The position numbers and the translations under genes were made by a program. The notes beneath the pieces were generated by a model, which searched no databases, was not told the origin of the DNA, and saw only the letters and a list, made by a program, of their open reading frames with translations. From Anthoceros angustus (Eukaryota; Plantae; Anthocerotophyta), in assembly GCA_010909165.1 (NCBI GenBank), contig MU008184.1, positions 434,001-498,000 on the forward strand: 64,000 nt of DNA, given 5' to 3'. Within the stretch, counting starts at the first letter, position 1. Each line of letters starts with the position of its first letter. This document shows, piece by piece, positions 4,469 to 63,740 of the stretch.

Positions 4469-5402
4469 GTAATACACCAATGCCCATACCCAATCTAGTG
4501 GACATGATCATAAGGAGATGAATGTTTATTCATAGGGTAGGACTATTATCAACAGTTCCAAAGATGCAAGTCTATCCATAGTGCAACATTGTTTATGAGA
4601 AGCTAAAAGGCTAGTCATAAGGTATAAGGTAGAGCTGCTCTTTCCCTTGCAGGGGGCTAGCGCTGACGTAGGGATTGATGCCCTGATTGTAAATTTGTCC
4701 TTGTTTTAATCAAGATGTTTTAATGTGATACGCTTCACGAAGTTCACATTCGCCTTCGTTTGGAAAAGCAGCTTCACATTTCGCGGATGCGGCGACGGCA
4801 GGTCACCACATAAAGCTGTCGCAAAACCGCGAACTTCTGATTTCACCGCACGATCATGGTCGCCTTCACCCGCGTCGCCTTGCTGCTAATTTTGCCAGGA
4901 TGCAATGCCGTGCCCAGTAGAGGCGCGGATGTGTGGGTGACATACCCGGATCGGAGCCTGGGAACTCCGCTGCCGGCAACTTCATCGCTGCGGCTTTCCT
5001 GGACGCTGACGGCCGGAAGATCGTTGTTGTATGCAACCAGGGATCCTCTGCTGCAGCCTTTAAGCTCATTTGGCAGGGATGCTCCGTTTAACAGGAGCTC
5101 CCTGCTTCTGGAGTCGCAATCGTGATATGGGCAGATGAGTAGCGACAATATCTTGTTATCACCAACAATGCTGTAGAGTAGGTGACTGGCTTCAAAAAGC
5201 CCGTCCTAAAGCCCCTCACCTACTCTAGGAGTGAAGTTATCTCACCTACTTCGTGGGATGGGCCATACAGTGGTTTTGTCTTCATATCTACACAAAGGAT
5301 ATCCTGTCTGTATGCTTCGCTACAATACCTCTTCCCATTTTAAAGAATTGTACAAGAGAATCTCTCCTCATGTAAAAAATGTCCTACCCAGCTGCCCACT
5401 GG

Positions 5403-9078: not shown

Positions 9079-9338
9079 GGGCCATTTGCATCTCCTTCGC
9101 GCTGTGCACAGACAGGCATCCAGCAATATCACCTCCACAGCTTTGCTCTTGGTGGGCCGGTGGGGTCTGGGAGGCTGGTGGGGTCTGATGAGAGCAATAG
9201 CACTCACTGTGATACTGAGATGAATTCTTGTCAGGGAAAAGGTTAGTGCGGAAATAGGCTCATACGGAATCGCAGAATGACAACGTTGTGGTCCCAGGAG
9301 CACGATCTTGTGTGAACAGCATTGCCAGGAAATTCAGG
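9079..9338 (-). pseudogene. Relic of the 3' end and 3' UTR of a nitroreductase paralog
   Basis: Aligns by eye with 12613-12878 and encodes PEFPGNAVH...DHNVVIL. Confidence 0.8.
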
Positions 9339-9344
9339 AAATTT

Positions 9345-9760
9345 AGCTAACAGCGTGAGGACTTTGTGCCCGAGCACTTGCTGAGCATGTCCTGTGAGCA
9401 TAGCTTTTCCAAGTGATCACATCCCGTGTGACCAGATTGTCAACACTCTGCGAGCACCCGCTAAGCTTCCACGTTTTGCATACATGTCCACCAGGCAGCT
9501 ACCAACAAATAAATTGGGCTCATCTGGCCTCCTCACAAACATCAGCATGAACCTGCCTGCCCGATGTCAAATCGGATGCACTGGCACATGCTTTAAGAGC
9601 AGCCACAAAGGTGTGATTGTCTGGCATCACTGTTGACTGCCGCATGTGCCAGAACATCTCCATGGCTTCAGTAGGCTGTCCATGATCAGTGTATGCCACA
9701 ATACTGGAAGGCCATGAATAAGCAATCGATTCCAGACAAGCAGTTCGTCCGGGAGGGATC
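9345..9760 (-). pseudogene. PLS-class PPR fragment
   Basis: WPSSIVAYTDHGQPTEAMEMFWHM, DNHTFVAALKACAS, NLFVGSCLVDMYAKRG, with frameshifts and stops. Confidence 0.85.
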
Positions 9761-15103: not shown

Positions 15104-15290
15104 CTAGCTGCAATGCCCGCTTGTCACACAATCTGAATCTTGTCCTGTTATCATGCAAGTCCATGTGACCCCGTTTCTGTGAGCAGGCCTGTAAAAGACA
15201 GTCTGCGCGTCTCCTAAACGCCCACAATTTGCGCACATGTTGACCAAACTGCTGGCTAGAAAGTCGTGGCCCCTGAAATTGACGCACATG
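15104..15290 (-). pseudogene. PLS-class PPR fragment
   Basis: FLASSLVNMCANCGRLGDAQTVF...VTWTCMITG. Confidence 0.75.
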
Positions 15291-45330: not shown

Positions 45331-45759
45331 TCAGGTCTGCGAATTTTGCATCCCGCTGGAAAGATTGCAGGAGAGAAGCTAGTCGAACGGAAAATGTTTC
45401 TCAAGACCGCTGCCTTCAGCCAGTTGATCCCCTATCAGCCTCACATCCCGATACTATGACGCTGAATTCAGGGCCGCCAGTCGCTCTATTTTAGGTCAGT
45501 TGGTGCGTTCATCGGTGACGTTGCAGCGTGAAGTAAACAGCGTGGAGCGATTGACGCGGCATCTGCCATTAACAGAGCCTCTCGTATGATTGCTCTCCTT
45601 GATGATAATCCTTCATGCTTTTGGGAATGAAAACATACTAGCGAGAACAGGAACCACATACATCAAGACCTGATGTGTAAAAAAGCAATGTGTGAGTGTC
45701 TGGAAGGATGGGATTCTTGAAACCGATGCTGTTAGCGTTTAGTATCGAGTCATGCAATT

Positions 45760-46130
45760 GTAATGCTCAAGAGTAGGTTTGATGCCATGCTATTCAGCCA
45801 TGGAATTAAAGTGCTTGCAACCCTCATAGACCAGTCCTCATGCCTGCATGCAAGCTTCTAAAAGGCAAGTAAAAATAGTGCTTATGCAAAACAAACTAGC
45901 ATCTGTGAGTGGAGCTGCATGCCCCTCTATAAATCATCAGTGCTTGCACAGGCATTCGAAAGGCAAGAAAAGCAAACATGGTCAGCTAAAATCAGGCCCT
46001 CATCCTCCTAGCCTCTTGGCCGAGCCCTTGCTCGGCATATCCGGCTATCAGGCGGTCCATGACACCAGATCCGTTGTGTTCATGCTGTCAAAAACTTGGC
46101 ATGCATCTTCAAGTTCACCCATCGAAAGAT
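45760..46130 (-). pseudogene. PLS-class PPR fragment
   Basis: Degenerate homology to the L2, P, L and S motifs of the PPR gene at 52140-52700. Confidence 0.75.
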
Positions 46131-50696: not shown

Positions 50697-50959
50697 GAGC
50701 CTCAATTGTGTAAACCTGCATCTGACTACTAAATAGCTGGAAACCTTGTGATTGCCGTGCCCTAGCTAGATATTTCGAGGTGTTCTGGAATCACTGCACC
50801 CTAGGTCAGCTGGCTGTCATCATCTGGATGCAGTTCATTTTCGGCATAGCATAGCTCGGCCTCGCATGTGGATTTCTGCAAGAGTCGTGATGAGTAATGT
50901 GCTACGACGTTCTTGTGAGAATTAGCAGGAGTGTTACAACCGTGTCTGTCTGCCTTGAT

Positions 50960-51170
50960 CGGCCTCGCATGTGGGTGAACATGTATGAAAAATGTGGGGG
51001 ACTTGAAGATGCATGCCGGGTTTCAAAAACTTGGCCACGAAGGATGTGGTGACAGGGAATGCCCTGATTGATGAGTGCGCCCAGCAAGGGCTCGGACATC
51101 AAGCTCTTGGTGTGTATGCACAAATGGAGCAGAAGCGCCTGATTTTGGCTAACCAAGTTACTTTTGTTTG
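50960..51170 (+). pseudogene. PPR S+P motif fragment, inverted relative to the adjacent PPR gene
   Basis: VNMYEKCGGLEDACRV / ATKDVVTGNALIDECAQQGLGHQALGVYAQMEQKRLILANQVTFV. Confidence 0.85.
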
Positions 51171-51470
51171 CCCCGAAGGATAGTGGAGACAATTTTTCAT
51201 TCGGTAACCAAGCGGATGCGTTAAGTGTCCTTGGTTAACGCTGGATTAATTGAATCAGTCTAAAATTTGTTCGTTTCAGAAAGAAAGATTCCTCCTTCGA
51301 TTCATCTCCTCTAAAATGATTTCAGGTGGCTCAGTGCTAGCCATCCAAGTCCATGTCCCAAGCTCGGTCAGGGACGAAGTTAAGAACGCTCATTCACCCC
51401 CAAAGAAAAAAAGCCATACACTTTCTCGGGCGAACACACTTGAGCACGGGCTGGTCCTTCATTATTCTCA

Positions 51471-54400
51471 TCAGGGTCGACCCTTACAACTGCAACAACC
51501 ATTTGCGAATCGATGCACACGGTAACCGTCCCTTACAACAATGTCCCTCTGTTCAAGCCTTGACATGATCTCCGTGGAACTGTGGCAGTCACTGCACATG
51601 CGTAGATTCTTCGTTACCACCAGAGGTGTCCCACTCGGAGTGTTCAAGAGACCAAACGCCAGAGCTAGCTTCTCGGCATGCCCACAAAGCGCATCTTCCT
51701 TTTCCTTCTCAGACAGTGGCTTCAACACCAACTTTGTGTGAGGTACGTGGCCTCCTTCCTGCTTCAGACGTGCATTCGTACTCTCTACCTTTAGCGCAAT
51801 ATCATCTCTTCTTTCTCCCACCGCAAACTTATGTACATGCTTCTTCACCTCAATGGTCGCCACTGCAGGTTTCTTGTTAGCTCCTGCAACCGTTCTCTGT
51901 GTTTCTACCCTGTCAACATCGCTCCACATACCTGCATCTGCGTAGGCATTGGCCATGAGCACATACGCAGACGCCCCTTGAGGGTCCAGCCTAACAATTC
52001 TTTCAAAACACCACACCGCCTTCTCTATATCCCCGTGACTTTTGCAGGCATTCAACAAAGTCGTCAAGCCCACAACATTACTTTGACCCTCACATGATAA
52101 TAGCATCTTCTCTGCCTCATCTAAATGGCCTGCACGCCCAAGAAGATCAATCATGCAGTTGTAATGCTCAGTAGTGGGTTTGATGCCATGCTGTTCATCC
52201 ATGGAATCAAAGTGCTTGCGACCCTCGAGGACCAGTCCCTCATGACTGCATGCTGCTAAAAGGCAGGTAAAAGTTGCATCATCAGGCTGAACACCGGCAG
52301 CTAACATCTCTTCAAAACAAGCTAGTGCTCTGTGGGCATCGTCACAAGTACCATACCCAGATATCAGGGCATTCCATGTCACCACATCCTTTGTGTTCAT
52401 GCTGTCAAAAACCTGGCGCGCAGCTTTCAGTTCACCACATTTTGCATACATGTCCACCAGGCAGTTGCCCAACACATATCCAGGAGTCCTCTTTCAACAA
52501 TCTGTGAGTGCAGCTCCCTGCCCATCTGTAAGGCACCAGTGCTTGCACAGGCCTTGAGAAGGCAAGCAAAAGTAAAATGGTCAGCCAAAATCAGGCCCTC
52601 CTGCTCCATTTGTCCATACAAAACAAGTGCCTCATTCCCAAGCCCTTGCTGGGCATACCCAGCAATCAGCACCGTCCATGCCACCACATCCTTGGTGGCC
52701 AAGCTTTCAAAGACCTGGCGTGCATCTTCGAGTTCACCACATTTTGCATACATGTCCATCAGGCAGGTGCCCAACACTACGTTATCCAGCAGTCCCCTCT
52801 CCACAATCTGTGAGTGCAGCTGCCTGCCCTTCTGTAAGGCACGAGCACTTGCACAGGCCTTCAGAAGGCAAGCAAAAGTGACATTATTAGCCAGAATCAG
52901 GCCTTCTTGCTCCATTTGTTCATACACAACAAGCACCTCATGTCCGAGTCCTTGCTGTGCATACCCAGCGATCAGGGCATTCCATGTCACCACATTCTTT
53001 GTGGCCAAGCTGTCAAAAACCTGGCGTGCAGCTTCCAGTTCACCACATTTAGCATACATGTCCACCAGGCAGTTGCCCACCACTACGTTCATCCAGCAGT
53101 CCTCTTCACAATCTGTGAGTGCAGCTGCCTGCCCTTCTGTAAGGCACCAGTGCTTGCACAGGCCTTCAGAAGGCAAGCAAAAGTAACATGGTCAGCCAAA
53201 ATCAGGCCGTCTTGCTCAATCTGTGCATACAAAACAAGCGCCTCCTGGCCGAGTCCTTGCTGTGCATACCCAGATATCAGAGCATTCCATGTCACCACAT
53301 CCTTTGTGGCCATGCTGTCAAGAACCTGACGTGCATCTTCCAGTTCACCACATTTTGCATACATGTCCACGAGGCAGGTGCCGACCAGTGCATCATTCAT
53401 TAGTCCTCTTTCCACAATCTGTGAGTGCAGCTGCCTGCCCTTCTGTACGACACCAGTGCTTGCACAGGCCTTCAGAAGGCAAGCAAAAGTAACATGGTTA
53501 GCCAAAATCAGGCCTTCTTGCTCCATTTGTTCATACACAACAAGCGCCTCATGTCCTAGTCCTTGCTGTGCATACCCAGCAATCAGGGCATTCCATGTCA
53601 CCACATCCTTTGTGGCCAAGCTGTCAAAACCTGGCGTGCATCTTCCAGTTCACCACATTTTGCATACATGTCCACCAGGCAGTTGCCCACCAGTCATCAT
53701 CCAGCAGTCCTCTTTCGACAATCTGAGTGCAGCTGCCTGCCCTTCTGTAAGGCACCAGTGCTTGCACAGGCCTTCAGAAGGCAAGCAAAAACATGGTCAG
53801 CCAAAATGGCCTCCTGCTCCATTTGTCCATACACAACAAGCGCCTCATGTCCGAGCCCTGTGCATACCCAGCAATCAGGGCATTCCATGTCACCACATCC
53901 TTTGTGGCCAAGCTGTCAAAACCTGGCGTGCATCTTCCAGTTCACCACATTTTGCATACATGTCCACCAGGCAGTTGCCCACTACGTTATCCAGCAGTCC
54001 TCGACAATCTGAGTGCAGCTGCCTGCCCTTCTGTAAGGCACCAGTGCTTGCACAGGCCTTCAGAAGGCAAGCAAAAGTAACATGGTCAGCCAAAATCAGG
54101 CCCTCCTGCTCCATTTGTCCATACACAACAAGCGCCTCATGTCCGAGCCCTGTGCATACCCAGCAATCAGGGCATTCCATGTCACCACATCCTTTGTGGC
54201 CAAGCTGTCAAAAACCTGGCGTGCATCTTCCAGGTCACCACATTTTGCATACATGTCCACAAGGCAGTTGCCCACAACTACGTTATGCAGCAGTCCTCTT
54301 TCGACAATCTGCGAGTGCAGCTGCCTGCCCTTTTGTAAGGCACCAGTGCTTGCACAGGCCTTTAGAAGGCAAGCAAAGGTAACACTGTCAGCCAAAATGA

Positions 54401-55110
54401 GGCCCTCCTCCTCCATTTGTCCATACACAACAAGCGCCTCTGTGCCGAGTCCTTGCTGTGCATACCCAGATAGTAGGGCATTCCACGTCACCACGTCCTT
54501 GGAGGCCATGCCGTCAAAAACCTGGCGTGCATCTTTCAGTTCACCACATTTTGCATACATGTCCACCAGGCAGGTGCCAACAAACAAGTCAGGAGGAATG
54601 CCACTGTGCAACACATCACAGTGCACTTTTCTGCCAGATTCCAAGTCGGCCGCCAATGCACAAGCTTGAAGGGCAGCTATAAAGACGTGAGCATCCGCCT
54701 TCAAACCTGACCTCGTCATCTCATGGTACAGTTGCATGGCCTCCTTAGGTTTCCCATGCTTAGCATATGCAGAGATGATGGAAGACCACATGAAGGCATC
54801 TGGTTTGCCCACCCTGGTGAGCACATCCATGGCCTCCTCTAGCCTACCTCCGCAAGCATACATGCGCAGGATATGGTTCCCCAAGTATGCATTCGACTCG
54901 TACCCAAGTTTGACACTGAGATCATGAACTCGTCGCCCACAACCAAATCCTTCTTAGCTGTACACAGTTTAGCACAGTGTAAAACAGAGACTGAGAAATG
55001 GCAGAGTCTGTCTGCGCCAGAGATTCCAGGGCTCCAACGGCCTCAGAAAGCTTCCCTGCTGACATAACATGCTCACGGTTCAGCCGTACGACATTCCGAT
55101 CCTGCACGCC
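51471..55110 (-). CDS. PLS-class PPR protein with E1/E2 and a DYW:KP (GRP-type) deaminase-like domain; candidate U-to-C organellar RNA editing factor; frameshifted in this sequence
   Basis: About 8 P-L-S triplets plus P2-L2-S2 and E1/E2, then KKPAVATIEV, GHAEKLALAFGLLNTP, KNLRMCSDCH, RDGYRVHRF..GCCSCKGRP*. Confidence 0.93.
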
Positions 55111-55559
55111 CCATGTTCAGGATTATCCGGAGAGCTCGACTTGGAAGGAGAGGCACCATGACCCAGCTGCATATCCAAGGAATTGAGCTGCTCATCAACC
55201 CAAGCGGGCTTATACACGTTGTTTAACCACAGGACCTCGCCGGACCCCTTACGCCGGAAGTCAGGTGAACGGGGGCTCTTCTTATCTCGTCTGTTGTCCC
55301 ACCACATGGCAGGGTCCAGAAATAATTGTTGCCACAAGTGCTCCTGCTCCTGGCGACGACCATCGTTGGAAACCCCGTCCACACCAACGCTTATCATCGG
55401 AAGTGGAAGCGCTGGGCTCCTAACACTGCTGCACCAGGAGGCTCTGGTTGCCAGGGGTTGACTCCCTAAGATGTGGTGAGCGGGGGCTCCTTGTAGAATC
55501 CCTGTACACACACCAATTTGCTGGGTCCACGGCAGGTCTGGTTGCCATACTGTGCCCAT
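55080..55559 (-). CDS. ORF with an OSB-type PDF motif, probable N-terminus of the PPR-DYW:KP gene
   Basis: LWQQLFLDPAMWWDNRRDKKSPRSPDFRRKGSGEVLWLNNVYKPAWVDEQL. It overlaps the PPR N-terminal frame at a GGGG run near 55110. Confidence 0.75.
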   Translation of the reverse strand: MGTVWQPDLPWTQQIGVCTGILQGAPAHHILGSQPLATRASWCSSVRSPALPLPMISVGVDGVSNDGRRQEQEHLWQQLFLDPAMWWDNRRDKKSPRSPDFRRKGSGEVLWLNNVYKPAWVDEQLNSLDMQLGHGASPSKSSSPDNPEHGACRIGMSYG

Positions 55560-58409
55560 CGTTCAGGGACCGCTGTCGGAAGTTGAGTCTAACGAGAGAC
55601 TGGCAGGATTCTCAGGTACCGTGCATGACCACACCACCCTGAAGGATAGTATCGAGAGAGAGGGTTTAAGGCTTAGGGATCGGGCGCCAAACGGGCCCCG
55701 TGCACGGAAATCTCCTGCCCCGTAGCGGCTCCGTTTTCCAGAGCCGTACTTCTCTCCAGTGCAGTCATTGGGTACCCAAGCGGATTTGTCCTTGACTCCT
55801 ATCCGCAGACGTTGGAAGTCCCCGTCGTCTAAACCTCATGACGAAATTAAAGCGCCTGCTTACCGTACCGCGCGTGTAGCTGCAAACCCCGCGCTGTGCG
55901 GCCGGCAGGCCGCTCTTGTTTCCCGGGGACCAACTCCCCGGCAACTGGTTGCTCTTTCTAGAGAACCCGAGCTCAGCGGTATTGTCCTGTTTAATGGCTA
56001 TGGTTTGGGGATTCTGGGTTTCCGCTCCGTCGACTTATCAATACGCACAAAGGGGGATGCTCACACAACGGATAGCACACACAATACGCAAACAACGCAC
56101 GATACGCACCGCGCACATGATACTAGAAGGGAAACGCGCACACTCCCTTGTCCGGGCAAACAAGGGAAAGCGTTAGAAACAAAACCCAGCACTTGGGCAT
56201 TTGATACCAAAGGGCTGTTGTTGTGAAGCCCTTCGAGGCCCTCTGAAATACGCTCTCTCTTGTCTCGTTCGAAGAAAGGGCTGCTGCTGTAAGGCCCTTA
56301 ACCCCAGAAGGCCGGAGCGACTCACTCCGAGTCGTGAGAGCCTCGTTTTGAGTCCTGGATTTATTTGTGGTCGGATTTTCGATCTGAGACTTTGGAGCAC
56401 AGCATGGCCGGGTCCTCTTCCACCTGCCACATTTTTCCTCGAAAAACACAGACACCATCTTCGCCCTCTATGATGCAAAGATCAAAAGATTCTTGGAAGA
56501 TGCTGAAAGATGCCACTCAATTATGTTGTAGACTATGCCCAAGCCGTTCCGCGCTCCGCCCCCCTGCCGTGCTCTTTCGCTCCCATCCGGATTTGATCGT
56601 TCAAAATTATTTTGGTTAATGAAAGAAAGTCGGATTCATCCCGAATTTTGCGAGCTTGTTGTTCTGAATGTGGTAGTGTAGTTTGCTCAACGAGCAAGTA
56701 TGTCCACATTGGTAGGCAAAGAAAGATGCTCACCTCACGCTGGTGCCCAAGGTGGATCGAAATGGCTATGGATATTTTTTACTGAGGGGGTGGTGCTTTT
56801 TTCTGAACATATAGTCGGAAAGAGGAGGTCATCACGGTAATTGTTATGTTGAGAACATTGCGGTCAGATTTTCTTGTAATTAGTAATTCATAATAACACC
56901 AAAAATGGGGCAAAAAGGCAGCCGGCCTTCTGGGGTTTAGGACTCTCAAATATATGATCTCTACCCGCAATGAACCGGTATCGTAAGGCTCTCCGGAACT
57001 TCCTAGTTTGTTATTTTCATCGTTGTAAAGCCCAGTGTGGTCCTTTAAATTAATCTCTGGAGGATGAGGAACTTTACTTTATTTAAGCCTTTCGAGCCTT
57101 CTTTGGGGATTTCAACAATTCGATATTAAGTGTGTTCATTTTGAAGTTCGTGTGCAGAATTTGTATATCTGATCATCCGGCATCTGCCAATCCATTTTTC
57201 GAGAAACTTGGCCTACCATTGCTTCAAAGAATTGCGTGGCAGAGGTGAAAGAAGCTGGGCAGCACGACGAAGCTCCATGGTCGGGCTGCTAACCCGGGTA
57301 CCCACTGCCTTCCCCCTCACATGGGGGCAGCCAAAAGTTTTTTGCCATGTGCAGGGCCAGTAGACCGTACTTGCGTTATAGTGAACATGGAGGAGAATTA
57401 GTCCTTAGTACATAGTCAGATGGTCAGTTCTTGGGTTATTATTATATATTTAGAAGAGTAAAAATCTCGCACAAATGATATTGAGGAGATGAAAAAGAAA
57501 AAAGAATATACAACAAGAACAAGAAAATAGAAGAGAAGAGTAGACGATATTAATAGGCGAGATGGGGAAAATAGATAGTAGGGTGATGACAAACAAAAAA
57601 GAAAAAGAACAATAAAAGGGAAAATGAGAAACCTTAACCTCTCTATACTATGCTACCAGATAATATCCGCTTCTTGCTTAATAATTTGCATGGGTTATTA
57701 GAACCCATGGACGTTTTGTTCGTTTCACTCTTATTCAATGTTCATCACGCAATTGTGAAGCAATTTTTGAGCACTCTCTTTCAGTTAGATCATTTCTAAT
57801 AAAGCTTGCCAACGCACATCTTACTTGGCAAACGGAAAACGAATTGAACCTATTTTTAGGGAAAATGAGCTGGGTCCTGTAAAAAGAGGAATTATTTCTA
57901 GAAGAAACACGAAGTAATTGTAGTCCATAGATGCAGGCCTATGTTTAAGTGTACAGGGCTACTGGGCTGTCTCTTTAGGAAGAATGACGCCTAGGGACTT
58001 TGTGTAGGGCTGCCATGCAATTTATTATGCTTAGAGAAGAGAGCTCACTAGAGCTATAAGAAGAGCCTTTGCCTTAGTAATAAAAGTCAATGTGAAATAG
58101 GGGTTTGTCCCTCTTGTCTATAGCTTTGTTTTCTTTTTGCTAACATAGCTTTGTGTGCTTGTGAACAAAACCCTTCGTAGGAAGGCTCTCTTTTTCAGTT
58201 CTAACGTGTGTTGGCCTTGACAAGTTGAAGGACATTCACTTTTCCACGTTTTTGCTTTACATTGTGACATACTGATGATATGCATTGTGCTTGTCTCATC
58301 CGTTGTTATGGTCGAGGTTCTTAACTTGTCATATGCCATGTGATCCCTATTGCTGAGTTTGTGTCCTCCTGTGTCCTGACGACAGGCTAACAGTTTCATT
58401 GACTGCCTG

Positions 58410-59851: not shown

Positions 59852-61396
59852 CTTGATGCCGAGGAGCTGTCGGATTTTGTAGGAGATGGACTCCTTCCCA
59901 AGTGGCCTCTGCCGACCAGAGCCGTGGCCGTGGTGCACAAGGAGCCTCCCATGTCGCACAGGGACAGCTTCTTGCTCCACAGGGAGAGCGCGGTTGTGCC
60001 GCGTGACATTCGGTTTCTTGACCCGGGGTTTGTCACCATGGGGAAACGAGAGGCCAAGACTCTTGATGAGCTGTTCAGGGATTATGGAGTGAGGCCGACG
60101 ACGCTGGAGGCCATGGGGCAGATGGGGTTCACTGTCGGTACCATTATCAATATGACCGACGATGAGTTAGATTCCTTGATAAAGACAATTATAGAGAGCT
60201 ACCGATTGGATCTCTTGGTTGGTGAGAGGTTTGGCATCAAATCGGCTGTCCGTGCTGAGAGGAGGTTTCTGGATGAGATAGACCGTGTTCGGATAGAGAT
60301 GAAGGCGAAAAATGAAAACATGGTTGATTTCAAAGGTCAATTCAAGATGTCGGACTGTACGAAAGCCGGGGTTGGAGTTGTCGGCAGTGGCGCTGGTACC
60401 GGTTGCGCTGTCATGGGCAGCATCTGTGGACCGTCTCCCAAAACTGGTAGGACCCTTGACCACCGATTTTGCTGTGCTTTCCTTCAGCTCCTACGCTGGT
60501 GTACTTTGGCAGCTGTCTTATTGTCCGGTTTGGTGATCTTGTTGTTCCTCAGCACTCAATAAATCTAGGAAGAAGAAGGATGCTAAAGATGAGCAGGCTC
60601 ATTCCCTGTTAAATGGGAATGACCTTGCCGTCATGAGTCCAGTGGCTCTGCCAGGGCTGCTCTCTGAGCTTAGTAGCGACAGTGAAGGAAAAGCTGGAGC
60701 TGGGAGAAGGAAGCCCAAGAGGAAGCGCAAGGCTAGGGAGCCTGGTGAGGATGGGGATGACAGGCCAAGGGAACATCCGTTTGTCGTGACAGAGCCTGGA
60801 GAGCTGGCAAGGGGGAAGAAGAATGGTTTAGATTACCTGTTCAACCTGTACGAGCTGGCTGGAAAGTACTTGGAGGAGGTGCAGCTTATCGCAAGGGAGA
60901 AGGGGGAAAAGTGTCCGACCAAGGTAAGCTGTTTTCTGATGTGTTCTTTTACTGAATTGGGGTATGAAAAAGAATCTTTACATTGATGATTTAATGGTCT
61001 TCAAAGTTCATACTTGAGACATGCATGAAACTGGTTCATCCTCTCATGCTTCTCATGGATCTGGTGGTGCAGGTCACGAACCAGGTCTTCCGACATGCGA
61101 AACTGCAGGGTGCTGGCTACATCAATAAGCCAAAGATGAGGCAATATGTACACTGCTATGCTTTGCACTGTTTAGCTAGTGCCGAGTCAGATGAACTTAG
61201 AAGGTCCTCCAAGGAGCGGGGAGAGAATGTTGGGGCGTGGTGTCAAGCCTGCTACCAACCGCTTGTAAAAATGGCTAGAGAAAAGGCCTGGGACATAGAG
61301 GGGTTGTTCAACAGCCACGAAAAGTTGAGGATTTGGTATGTCCCAAAGAAGCTAATACAGCTGTGTCATGCAGAGAAGAGTAAGCACTACCAATAG
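59852..61396 (+). CDS. LFY: LEAFY/FLORICAULA transcription factor, 3 coding exons (..60446, 60553-60923, 61073-61396); start codon uncertain
   Basis: SAM domain [13 protein letters not shown]...[16 protein letters not shown]...[19 protein letters not shown]-binding domain [29 protein letters not shown]|[49 protein letters not shown]. Confidence 0.98.
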
Positions 61397-62799: not shown

Positions 62800-63740
62800 T
62801 TCTTGCATTGCCCTCTACAGATGAAGGGCTCAAGTTGTCCCAAGCCCTGACGAGAATATCCTGCTGTCCTGGCATTCCATGTCACCACACCTTCTTTTGC
62901 CAAGCTTGTCAAACACACCACAAGCATCGATATCACCCAGGCTGCCACATCCTGCATACATGCTTACCAAACTCCAGGTGTGGAACAATCATCCTTCAGC
63001 CCACGTTCTCCAATTTGTGGGTGAAGCTGCTTCCAGAACTGGGGTACCCACACTAGCACATGCGTGCAGTAGACACACAAATGTCACAGATGTTTTCTGC
63101 GCCATCTAAATGGCCTGCACGCCCTAGAAGATCAGTCATGCAATTGGGATGCTGAATATTAGGTTTCCATGCCATCCTGTTCAGGCATGGAATCAAAGTG
63201 CTTGCGACCTCATTCCCCAGTCCCTCACGACTCCCTGGTCTTAAAAGGGAAGTAAAAGTAGCATCATCAGGCTCACTACGGCGGTGAACATCTCCTCGAA
63301 TCAAGCTAGTGCGTTCTGTGACCTTCATCACAAGTACCACACAAAGCTATCAACCCATTCCATGTCACCACATCCTTCGTGGCTTAGCTGTCAAACACCC
63401 GGCGTGCATCGTCCAGTTCGCCAACTTTGCACACTTCTTGGCTGCGACCTTCCTGTTCATACCCAGAATCAGAGCCGCTCATGTTGCCACATATTTCGTG
63501 TCCAAGTGTCAAGCACCTGGCTTGCATCTTCCAGTTCGACAATTGCATAAATGCCAAGCAGACAAGTGCCCACAGGTGTGCTATCCTCTTTCCAAAGTCT
63601 GTGAATGCAGCTGCCTGGCCTTCTGTAAGGCACCAACGCTTGCCAGGGCCTTCAGAAGCGAAAGTGACATAGTCATCCACAATCAGGCTCTCCTGTTCGA
63701 ATTGCACACAACAGAATACAACCTTCTTGGCCGAGCCTAT
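62800..63740 (-). pseudogene. Degraded PLS-class PPR gene
   Basis: Fragments ELDDARRVFDS, EPDDATFTSLL, HPNCMTDLLGRAGHLDGAE and KEGVVTWNA, with many stops and indels. Confidence 0.85.

Follow-up and report, generated by a model that had tools for sequence, protein, structure and literature searches.

Sequence, profile and predicted fold all mark a segment at 55167-55349 on the minus strand of the window (the whole 64,000-nt stretch of Anthoceros angustus DNA analysed here) as genuinely homologous to the PDF motif of OSB proteins. It lies ahead of a PPR array, and we think it probable that it represents a PPR-type PDF, i.e. the first folded module of a GRP editing factor that would bind single strands unspecifically, in a gene copy that is broken as assembled. 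The PDF-PPR fusion itself is a real and widespread gene architecture in hornwort-like and fern data. The usual picture of a PPR editing factor is a PPR tract with C-terminal E and DYW domains, to which an N-terminal PDF would add a third functional part. The motif is usually tied to OSB proteins and DNA maintenance, and the PPR fusions give it a second life outside OSB.

The PDF motif and its relation to OSB proteins

The motif makes up residues 71-131 of a minus-strand ORF (55080..55559). When the six-frame translated window was compared with a profile of 70 PDF motifs, 55167-55349 scored E = 1.6e-28, far beyond chance, and the next best piece E = 0.27. The sequence-only reading of this DNA, which had placed a PDF motif at the 5' end of the PPR gene and on the same strand, is borne out: the segment lies directly 5' of the PPR-E-DYW gene and shares its strand. 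All five invariant and all nine near-invariant columns of the 70-sequence alignment were matched by the window motif, the invariant residues W, P, WWDNR, K, PDF, K, LW and P-W being present. A phmmer search against 1.84 billion proteins gave 692 matches at E <= 1e-3 (206 of them at E <= 1e-10), mostly OSB proteins, with E-values down to 1e-85 among the matches for multi-PDF OSBs. Matches to the window motif also included a Striga 'organellar ssDNA binding protein 3', and BLASTP showed 44% identity to the Populus 'protein OSB1, mitochondrial-like' (E = 8e-18, with a second E of 3e-14 for the poplar matches of that name).

With regard to structure, the AlphaFold (AF2) model of the motif (pLDDT 88.8) has the predicted shape of a helix, a small three-stranded sheet and a second helix. 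Among reviewed proteins (Swiss-Prot), the only significant Foldseek matches to this model were A. thaliana OSB1-4, at their PDF positions (E = 4.5e-6 to 2.7e-4, TM 0.64-0.82), and the matching AFDB clusters were named OSB1, OSB2, OSB3 or 'nucleic acid-binding'. The likeness to the OSB PDF consensus, noted in the sequence-only reading, is thus upheld by phmmer, profile, BLASTP and Foldseek alike. Pfam, PHROGs and PDB sequence and fold searches with the motif returned nothing, neither a curated model nor a solved structure.

The window protein shares with OSB proteins this motif of ~50-60 residues with its Pro-Asp-Phe signature, its invariant residues and its predicted fold, but the surroundings of the motif differ. 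In OSB proteins an SSB-like OB fold lies N-terminal of the C-terminal PDF(s), and PF00436 was present in the OSB matches. The window PDF is instead N-terminal and followed by a PPR array, only a 70-residue leader stands upstream of it, and Pfam found neither PF00436 nor any other domain in ORF 55080..55559. Because there is no PF00436 or OB fold upstream, the window protein is not to be counted in the OSB family, with which it shares the motif only. The window PDF also falls in a clade of its own, set apart by fixed residues: in a tree with 77 OSB PDFs, the 14 PPR-linked PDFs, window copy included, formed one clade (support 99/95.9), in which the nearest neighbour of the window PDF was that of P0135, a relative described below. 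Three features are specific to this clade and all of them occur in the window PDF (Q before L-W, K-P-x-W, and W-V-D), while the invariant aromatic residues are kept. The grouping suggests one origin for the PPR-linked PDFs, apart from the OSB PDFs, and we propose here to treat them as a distinct 'PPR-type' branch of the PDF family.

A weaker second copy of the motif had also been claimed, at 55450..55530 on the minus strand. The quoted letters do occur in the sequence, but the profile gave them only E = 0.27 and tblastn within the window E = 0.003, and their link to the main copy at the DNA level is a match of 15 nt. The invariant D, D-F and L-W are missing, and the frame differs from that of the presumed presequence. 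We therefore rejected this copy, which is probably a chance likeness or a faint relic.

Gene layout and DYW:KP type

The gene as a whole, about 51471-55559 on the minus strand, is by its domain content of the PLS-class PPR-E-DYW:KP (GRP) editing-factor type. It begins at a putative start, the ATG at 55559, which closely follows a stop in the same frame. The first 70 residues (55350..55559) contain a single acidic residue in the first 60 and are rich in S, A, P and L, a composition that would fit a putative targeting role; P0135 has a leader of comparable size (78 residues). Contigs from RNA runs matched 55351-55482 and 55501-55632 exactly. After the PDF motif come an S/P-rich linker and the stretch where the PDF frame gives way to the first PPR-like helix (55054..55166); an in-frame TGA at 55082-55080 closes the PDF frame there. 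The helix itself (G-K-L-S-E-A-V...) is encoded in another frame by a 61-aa ORF (54922..55107), which aligns with the stretch just before the first PPR of P0135. The main N-terminal PPR ORF (54096..54884, 262 aa, Pfam PPR E = 4.9e-43) has the frame of the PDF ORF, and in tblastn residues 27-472 of P0135 matched as one HSP in a single frame spanning 55520-54126. A central PLS array of roughly 101-aa triplets was traced over 52476..54180 by the tblastn frame map and the ORF list. The terminal ORF (51471..52475, 334 aa) holds the last PPRs and an E motif at 51849-52037 (Pfam E_motif E = 4.3e-12); a GRP-subtype DYW:KP domain follows at 51480-51752 (DYW_deaminase E = 6.5e-34), and the ORF ends with a stop codon at 51471-51473. 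PPR/PPR_2, E_motif and DYW_deaminase were all recovered by Pfam, and HAE and CSDCH are visible in the DYW domain, as is expected of the PLS-class PPR-E-DYW type.

In the DYW:KP and GRP variants a K-P pair replaces P-G at the domain start and GRP replaces the C-terminal DYW (PMC11845758, PMC9478123). The window domain starts with K-K-P-A-V-A, i.e. with K-P at the PG-box position, carries HAE...CSDCH and ends in GRP, features that identify it as KP subclass, GRP variant. It has the PLS array, the E motif, the K-P pair, HAE...CxxCH and GRP in common with the hornwort PPR-DYW:KP proteins known as candidate or designer U-to-C editors (KP2, KP3), but these are described with a PPR tract and C-terminal domains only, without an N-terminal PDF module (PMC9478123, PMC11845758).

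PDF-PPR fusions in relatives and the state of the window copy

The PDF-PPR-E-DYW:KP architecture proposed for this DNA exists in one piece in the relative P0135/L001, where a continuous ORF of 753 aa encodes PDF, PPR array, E and DYW (GRP). Intact PDF-PPR proteins were found in Logan contigs (the Logan relatives coming from runs SRR33208241/2) and in the ferns Adiantum, Ceratopteris and Pteridium; the fern proteins P0086, P0173 and P0116 and the transcript-derived P0083 all have the PDF N-terminal, ahead of the PPR array. The fern proteins (Adiantum KAI5076972.1, Ceratopteris KAH7429238.1 and the Pteridium transcript) carry a PDF of the same motif clade and share with the window family an L-C-x-x-G-x-L first helix after the linker, but they terminate in E-like motifs without a DYW domain. 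They are annotated only as hypothetical or PPR proteins. Moreover, three ESM-Atlas clusters named PPR or DYW (127, 57 and 63 members) matched the motif model at TM 0.78-0.85. P0009 has three PDFs in tandem. A word-index homologue search started from the N-terminal parts of P0135 and P0086 gave back little besides the queries and was, given the limits of the word index, uninformative.

These fusions bear on whether the PDF ORF could be an independent small gene that merely adjoins the PPR gene. As assembled it is indeed a separate 159-aa ORF with its own stop, and gene callers also gave the PDF-only ORFs P0089 and P0118. In these two cases, however, PPR-DYW ORFs follow after 44-135 nt and are joined to the PDF ORF by canonical intron signals. 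Continuous PDF-PPR fusions exist as well, and coverage of the family continues without a gap from the PDF to the PPR array, with PDF bins as deep as PPR bins, which together make an independent gene highly improbable. In L006 and L002 the PDF ORF is joined to the PPR-DYW ORF through candidate introns of 75 and 88 nt, respectively, which are likely canonical (GT, a CTGAC branch site, a pyrimidine tract and a CAG acceptor).

Both in this hornwort and in its relatives, the gene is one of a transcribed family with a very high copy number. The summed depth of contigs from three RNA runs and one DNA run was very high over 51387-55687, and in the flanks the RNA depth was zero. A search for contigs encoding the window's 159-aa ORF gave none on record, and in the read and contig layout at the locus no single piece bridged the PDF and the PPR array, thousands of paralogous contigs being piled up there.

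As assembled, the gene does not have one intact reading frame. The sequence-only reading held that one frame change near 55110 would join the PDF to the PPR N-terminus. Such a change, which can be placed only to 55122-55054, does lead from the PDF ORF into the 61-aa ORF, but the main PPR ORF is reached only through two further changes at about 54967 and 54935, so that at least three separate the two. From the main PPR ORF to the DYW domain about eight more are needed; tblastn with one repeat unit placed those of the central array at about 54150, 53915, 53860, 53735, 53695, 53622, 53095 and 52477. In total, the 4.1 kb contain about 11-13 frame changes, all of the deletion type, and one in-frame stop. 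Compared with the window, family contigs showed an additional base after 55053, an additional T at about 55081 in the loose-end consensus, and inserted or omitted bases at 53088-53107, 53694 and 53723.

Intron models for the junction were also considered. Several GT/GC..AG pairs would restore the frame, but none has convincing signals. One unproven candidate, a 61-nt GT..AG intron at 55162-55102, would share its acceptor position with the intron of L006. The putative intron overlaps a linker resembling the coding linker of P0135 (H-x-A-S-P-S); given this overlap and the unconvincing signals, an intron at the junction counts as a candidate only.

In its assembled form this copy cannot make a fusion protein. 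Either the paralogue has decayed, or polishing of this multi-copy region failed to remove deletion errors of the long reads. A dead paralogue, in which the PDF would be the relic of a once-intact PDF-PPR-DYW gene that makes no fusion protein while the architecture still holds for the family, has a substantial chance of being the right explanation, somewhat short of even. The number of frame changes and the in-frame TGA argue for it, as do small in-frame deletions in the central repeats, and the nearby LEAFY exons (about 1 kb coding) are clean, which indicates that the assembly is not uniformly ridden with indels. On the other hand, deletions throughout are what long-read consensus errors would produce, and short-read polishing often fails in multi-copy families. 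A DNA-run contig from the same sample, which starts in the single-copy 3' flank, differed from the window over 51200-51494 (295 nt) by three gaps and only one substitution, and the identity of the RNA-run contigs to the two 5' stretches given above also speaks against decay.

Possible roles of the PDF module

The sequence-only reading suggested that the motif could link U-to-C editing to nucleoids or nascent transcripts, or add a second nucleic-acid or partner-binding module. A special tie to U-to-C editing found no support. In a partial tally of PDF carriers, the window gene, L001 and L002-like genes are of the KP type, but a PPR-type PDF also stands ahead of PG-box DYW domains in L006 and L004, and the fern carriers end in E motifs without any DYW. 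A KP-specific fusion was rejected on these grounds, and the PDF appears to be a generic module shared by PLS editing factors of KP, PG and E type rather than a U-to-C device. U-to-C editing has itself been shown only for designer KP proteins (PMC9478123). A literature search gave no paper in which the term 'CURE' domain, named in the sequence-only reading for hornwort reverse-editing candidates, occurs together with hornwort RNA editing. Likewise, none was found that links the PDF motif to PPR proteins, in a search that covered the hornwort PPR literature incompletely, so that an earlier description is possible.

We favour a role of the PDF next to the PPR tract. PPR tracts bind RNA in an orientation that puts their N-terminal repeats nearest the 5' end of the target, so that the PDF module would be placed immediately 5' of the sequence they recognise. 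In this position it may bind single-stranded nucleic acid without sequence specificity through its conserved Trp and Phe residues, and might increase affinity or hold the site open for the sequence-specific PPR tract and the DYW enzyme at the C-terminus. A similar logic, with a general nucleic-acid-binding domain ahead of a sequence-specific PPR tract, is found in PPR proteins with an extra N-terminal RNA-binding domain such as PPR4 (RRM-PPR); PPR4 differs in having an RRM instead of the PDF fold and in belonging to the P-class splicing factors instead of the PLS editing factors.

According to reviews, OSB1 needs no more than its PDF motif to bind ssDNA (PMC6963530, PMC4166229), and OSB1 and OSB2 prefer ssDNA over RNA (PMC4166229). 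Given this preference, a role on the RNA side is an extrapolation from the OSB proteins, and an ssDNA role has to be reckoned with. The PDF might bind organellar ssDNA and so serve as a tether that holds the editing factor at nucleoids or transcription bubbles, where it would edit co-transcriptionally. Both the activities of OSB1 and OSB2 and the invariant aromatics retained in the PPR-type clade are consistent with such a tether, but the clade has fixed substitutions of its own, which may have altered specificity, and the PDF also occurs on E-type fern PPRs that have no enzyme domain; on balance we regard it as rather unlikely. Still less probable is that the PDF serves protein-protein contacts (oligomerisation or recruitment of a partner) instead of binding nucleic acid. 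AtOSB2 has been reported as a tetramer (PMC6963530), and for the E-type fern PDF-PPRs a DYW enzyme would have to be supplied in trans; yet nothing assigns OSB oligomerisation to the PDF motif, whose only documented activity is ssDNA binding.

Returning to single-strand binding beside the PPR tract, a wider proposal can be offered tentatively, as possible but doubtful: the PPR-type PDF would be an undescribed accessory domain of PLS organellar editing factors, fused once and kept in hornwort-like and fern lineages (KP, PG and E), and would bind single strands unspecifically on the 5' side of the PPR footprint. If so, its helper role may be covered by separate proteins in seed plants, and adding a PDF to synthetic GRP-type U-to-C editors would improve them; designer editors based on the GRP-type consensus, in which the PDF was omitted, edit weakly, at only about 22-26% (PMC9478123). 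The module would moreover offer a testable handle on how editing factors find and hold their targets, be it RNA or nucleoid ssDNA.

As for the occurrence of the PDF motif at large, reviews call it green-plant specific; it was also seen on a phage-like contig.

Identity of the motif and layout of the gene

The motif at 55167-55349 (-) is a PDF motif, as known from the plant organellar ssDNA-binding (OSB) proteins. Pfam holds no model for this motif. A phmmer search of 1.84 billion representative proteins with a 76-residue query gave 692 matches at E <= 1e-3 (206 at E <= 1e-10), the majority carrying 1-13 motif copies C-terminal to an SSB-type OB fold (PF00436); among them are proteins named in NCBI/UniProt as OSB1 (Populus) and organellar single-stranded DNA-binding protein 3 (Striga). 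In BLASTP the window copy was 44% identical to each of the two motifs of poplar OSB1 (E = 8e-18 and 3e-14), and it retains every invariant and near-invariant residue of a 70-sequence alignment. The profile made from this alignment found the window copy in the six-frame translation with E = 1.6e-28, and the similarity claimed by the earlier sequence-only reading is thus significant. That reading had also placed a second, weaker copy at 55450-55530, which we do not count as a PDF motif because its profile E-value was 0.27, invariant residues are missing and it lies in a different frame.

AlphaFold2, run on the alignment, predicted a confident small domain (pLDDT 88.8) consisting of a helix, a three-stranded sheet and a helix. 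Among reviewed UniProt models this prediction significantly matched only Arabidopsis OSB1, OSB3, OSB2 and OSB4, where it fell on their C-terminal PDFs; matching AFDB clusters were likewise OSB-named, and no solved structure resembled it. According to reviews, the PDF motif of OSB1 alone suffices for ssDNA binding, and OSB1 and OSB2 prefer ssDNA over dsDNA or RNA (PMC6963530, PMC4166229).

The string first quoted for the motif is indeed present, at residues 71-131 of a 159-aa ORF (55080..55559, -) whose ATG immediately follows a stop and which begins with a leader of 70 residues, few of them acidic. On the same strand follow a 61-aa ORF in a different frame (54922..55107), a 262-aa PPR ORF in the frame of the PDF ORF (54096..54884), a chain of additional PPR ORFs, and a terminal 334-aa ORF (51471..52475) with PPRs, E motif and DYW deaminase domain, as judged by Pfam. 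This domain has a K-P pair at its start in the canonical P-G place, contains HAE and CSDCH and ends in GRP; by these residues it is of the DYW:KP class, in the hornwort GRP variant, under the definitions given in PMC11845758 and PMC9478123. More PPR fragments of the same family lie at 50897-51192 (+), 63071-63428 (-), 45748-46119 (-), 9312-9735 (-) and 15143-15277 (-), some directly 3' of the PPR-DYW gene on the opposite strand, and no PDF motif was found near any of these fragments.

PDF motifs joined to PPR tracts in related genes

It is the relatives, not the window locus, that indicate that the PDF motif is part of a PPR gene. Among the best 150 of the phmmer matches, eight were PPR proteins with an N-terminal PDF motif. 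One of them, P0135, is an uninterrupted ORF of 753 aa on a Logan contig of 9 kb; behind a leader and the PDF come a linker, PPRs, an E motif and a DYW domain that opens with K-P and closes with GRP. Window positions 55520-54126 align in a single frame to residues 27-472 of this protein. Four fern proteins, from Adiantum capillus-veneris, A. nelumboides, Ceratopteris richardii and a Pteridium transcriptome ORF, share the N-terminal layout and have E-like C-terminal ends, and a further match (P0009) has three PDFs ahead of its PPRs. An ESM Atlas shape search with the PDF model returned, alongside one OSB cluster, three clusters bearing PPR or DYW-domain protein names (127, 57 and 63 members; 637-792 aa; TM 0.78-0.85 over 71-73 residues). 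Two gene models joining PDF motifs to a kinesin motor or IBB domain (P0038, 1526 aa; AFDB A0A484M7X6, 914 aa) are probably merged gene predictions.

PPR genes usually have few introns. Two PDF-only ORFs among the phmmer matches (P0089 and P0118) turned out, as predicted from splice-site motifs, to be first exons of PPR genes. On contig L006 the PDF ORF and a 956-aa PPR-DYW ORF share a frame and are separated by 75 nt with two stops (898-972), a candidate spliceosomal intron with CTG|GTAATT, a CTGAC branch site, a pyrimidine tract and CAG|G. On contig L002 an 88-nt candidate intron (4486-4573; AA|GTAACG, CTGAC, GTGCAG|G) joins the frames of the PDF and PPR-DYW ORFs, at a different linker position. 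The fusion may have arisen by exon shuffling, as the position of the PDF on a first exon hints.

A maximum-likelihood tree was built from 91 PDF motifs (65 columns, a short alignment in which deeper branching is weak). In it, 14 PPR-associated motifs grouped as a single clade set against 77 OSB motifs, with support 99/95.9. The clade comprises the window copy, P0135, P0127, P0112, P0089, P0118, the three motifs of P0009 and five motifs from ferns; the Adiantum P0059 pair of motifs alone fell outside. Residues fixed in the clade (Q before L-W, K-P-x-W and W-V-D) are all present in the window copy. The C-termini behind the PDF motif vary, being KP/GRP in the window and on the P0135 contig (L001), a KP-like variant on L002, PG-box DYW on L006 and L004, and E-only in ferns. 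The proposed tie between the fusion and reverse editing (DYW:KP) is therefore not upheld, and these PLS proteins share the module as a general accessory.

State of the window copy and transcription of its family

A frame map based on one repeat unit and a three-frame reading places a frame change within 55122-55054, and additional ones at about 54967, 54935, 54150, 53915, 53860, 53735, 53695, 53622, 53095 and 52477. The PDF frame ends in a TGA at 55082-55080. Relative to the window, family contigs have one added base at 54935, 54967 and 55053, and their loose-end consensus inserts another T at about 55081 and would thereby abolish the TGA. This consensus requires three linker changes, not one, giving 11-13 frame changes in total. 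The single change that was suggested to join PDF to PPR reaches the 61-aa ORF only.

We lean towards residual long-read assembly error, in a repeat beyond the reach of short-read polishing, as the source of these breaks. Every frame change is a deletion in the window, and over the 295 nt of 51200-51494 three gaps and one substitution separate the window from a contig of the DNA run made from the same sample as the RNA run; this pattern fits long-read errors. A pseudogene is the less probable reading, yet it gains from the LEAFY exons that served as local control of assembly quality: three intact exons at 59924-61396 (+), encoding a SAM-like N-terminal and a DNA-binding domain, provide about 1 kb of coding sequence, 5 kb away, with no frame break. 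At 53620-54180 (-), two adjacent PLS units show the same unusual damage: the frame changes at A-Q|G-L-G, and H-S-D-C-R replaces H-S-Q-I-V-E-R. This reflects either duplication of a unit that already bore the lesions or an assembly that entered a single erroneous unit twice.

Across 51387-55687 the summed depth of contigs, drawn from one DNA run and three RNA runs, is very high and equal in PDF and PPR bins; in the flanks RNA-run depth falls to zero while the DNA run covers parts. The PDF region is therefore part of a family that is both large and transcribed. Over 55351-55482 and 55501-55632, two contigs from RNA runs are identical to the window.

Possible role and wider distribution

As judged from homology and predicted structure, a folded domain related to a documented ssDNA-binding motif heads PPR editing factors and has been kept in both fern and hornwort-type sequences. 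A PPR tract lies along its RNA with the N-terminus towards the 5' end, and the module would therefore sit just upstream of the recognised sequence, where it may add unspecific single-strand affinity or hold the site open. Alternatively, it could tether the editing factor to ssDNA or nucleoids, as the sequence-only reading proposed, or bind a partner.

The literature searched, whose coverage omits the two main hornwort PPR papers, does not connect the PDF motif with PPR proteins, and the DYW:KP design papers mention no N-terminal module; in public records the fern proteins are named "hypothetical" or plain "PPR". Reviews describe the motif as green-plant specific. A 185-aa protein (P0132, L007:5001-5558) carries a perfect PDF motif at its C-terminus, 64-68% identical to motifs of the alga Prasinoderma coloniale. 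Its metagenome contig has tightly packed small genes on one strand, and the protein directly follows a PD-(D/E)XK nuclease and lies close to a DnaB-type helicase, a neighbourhood that looks like a phage recombination/replication module. Uroviricota clusters were also matched in ESM Atlas shape and feature searches (TM 0.62-0.64).
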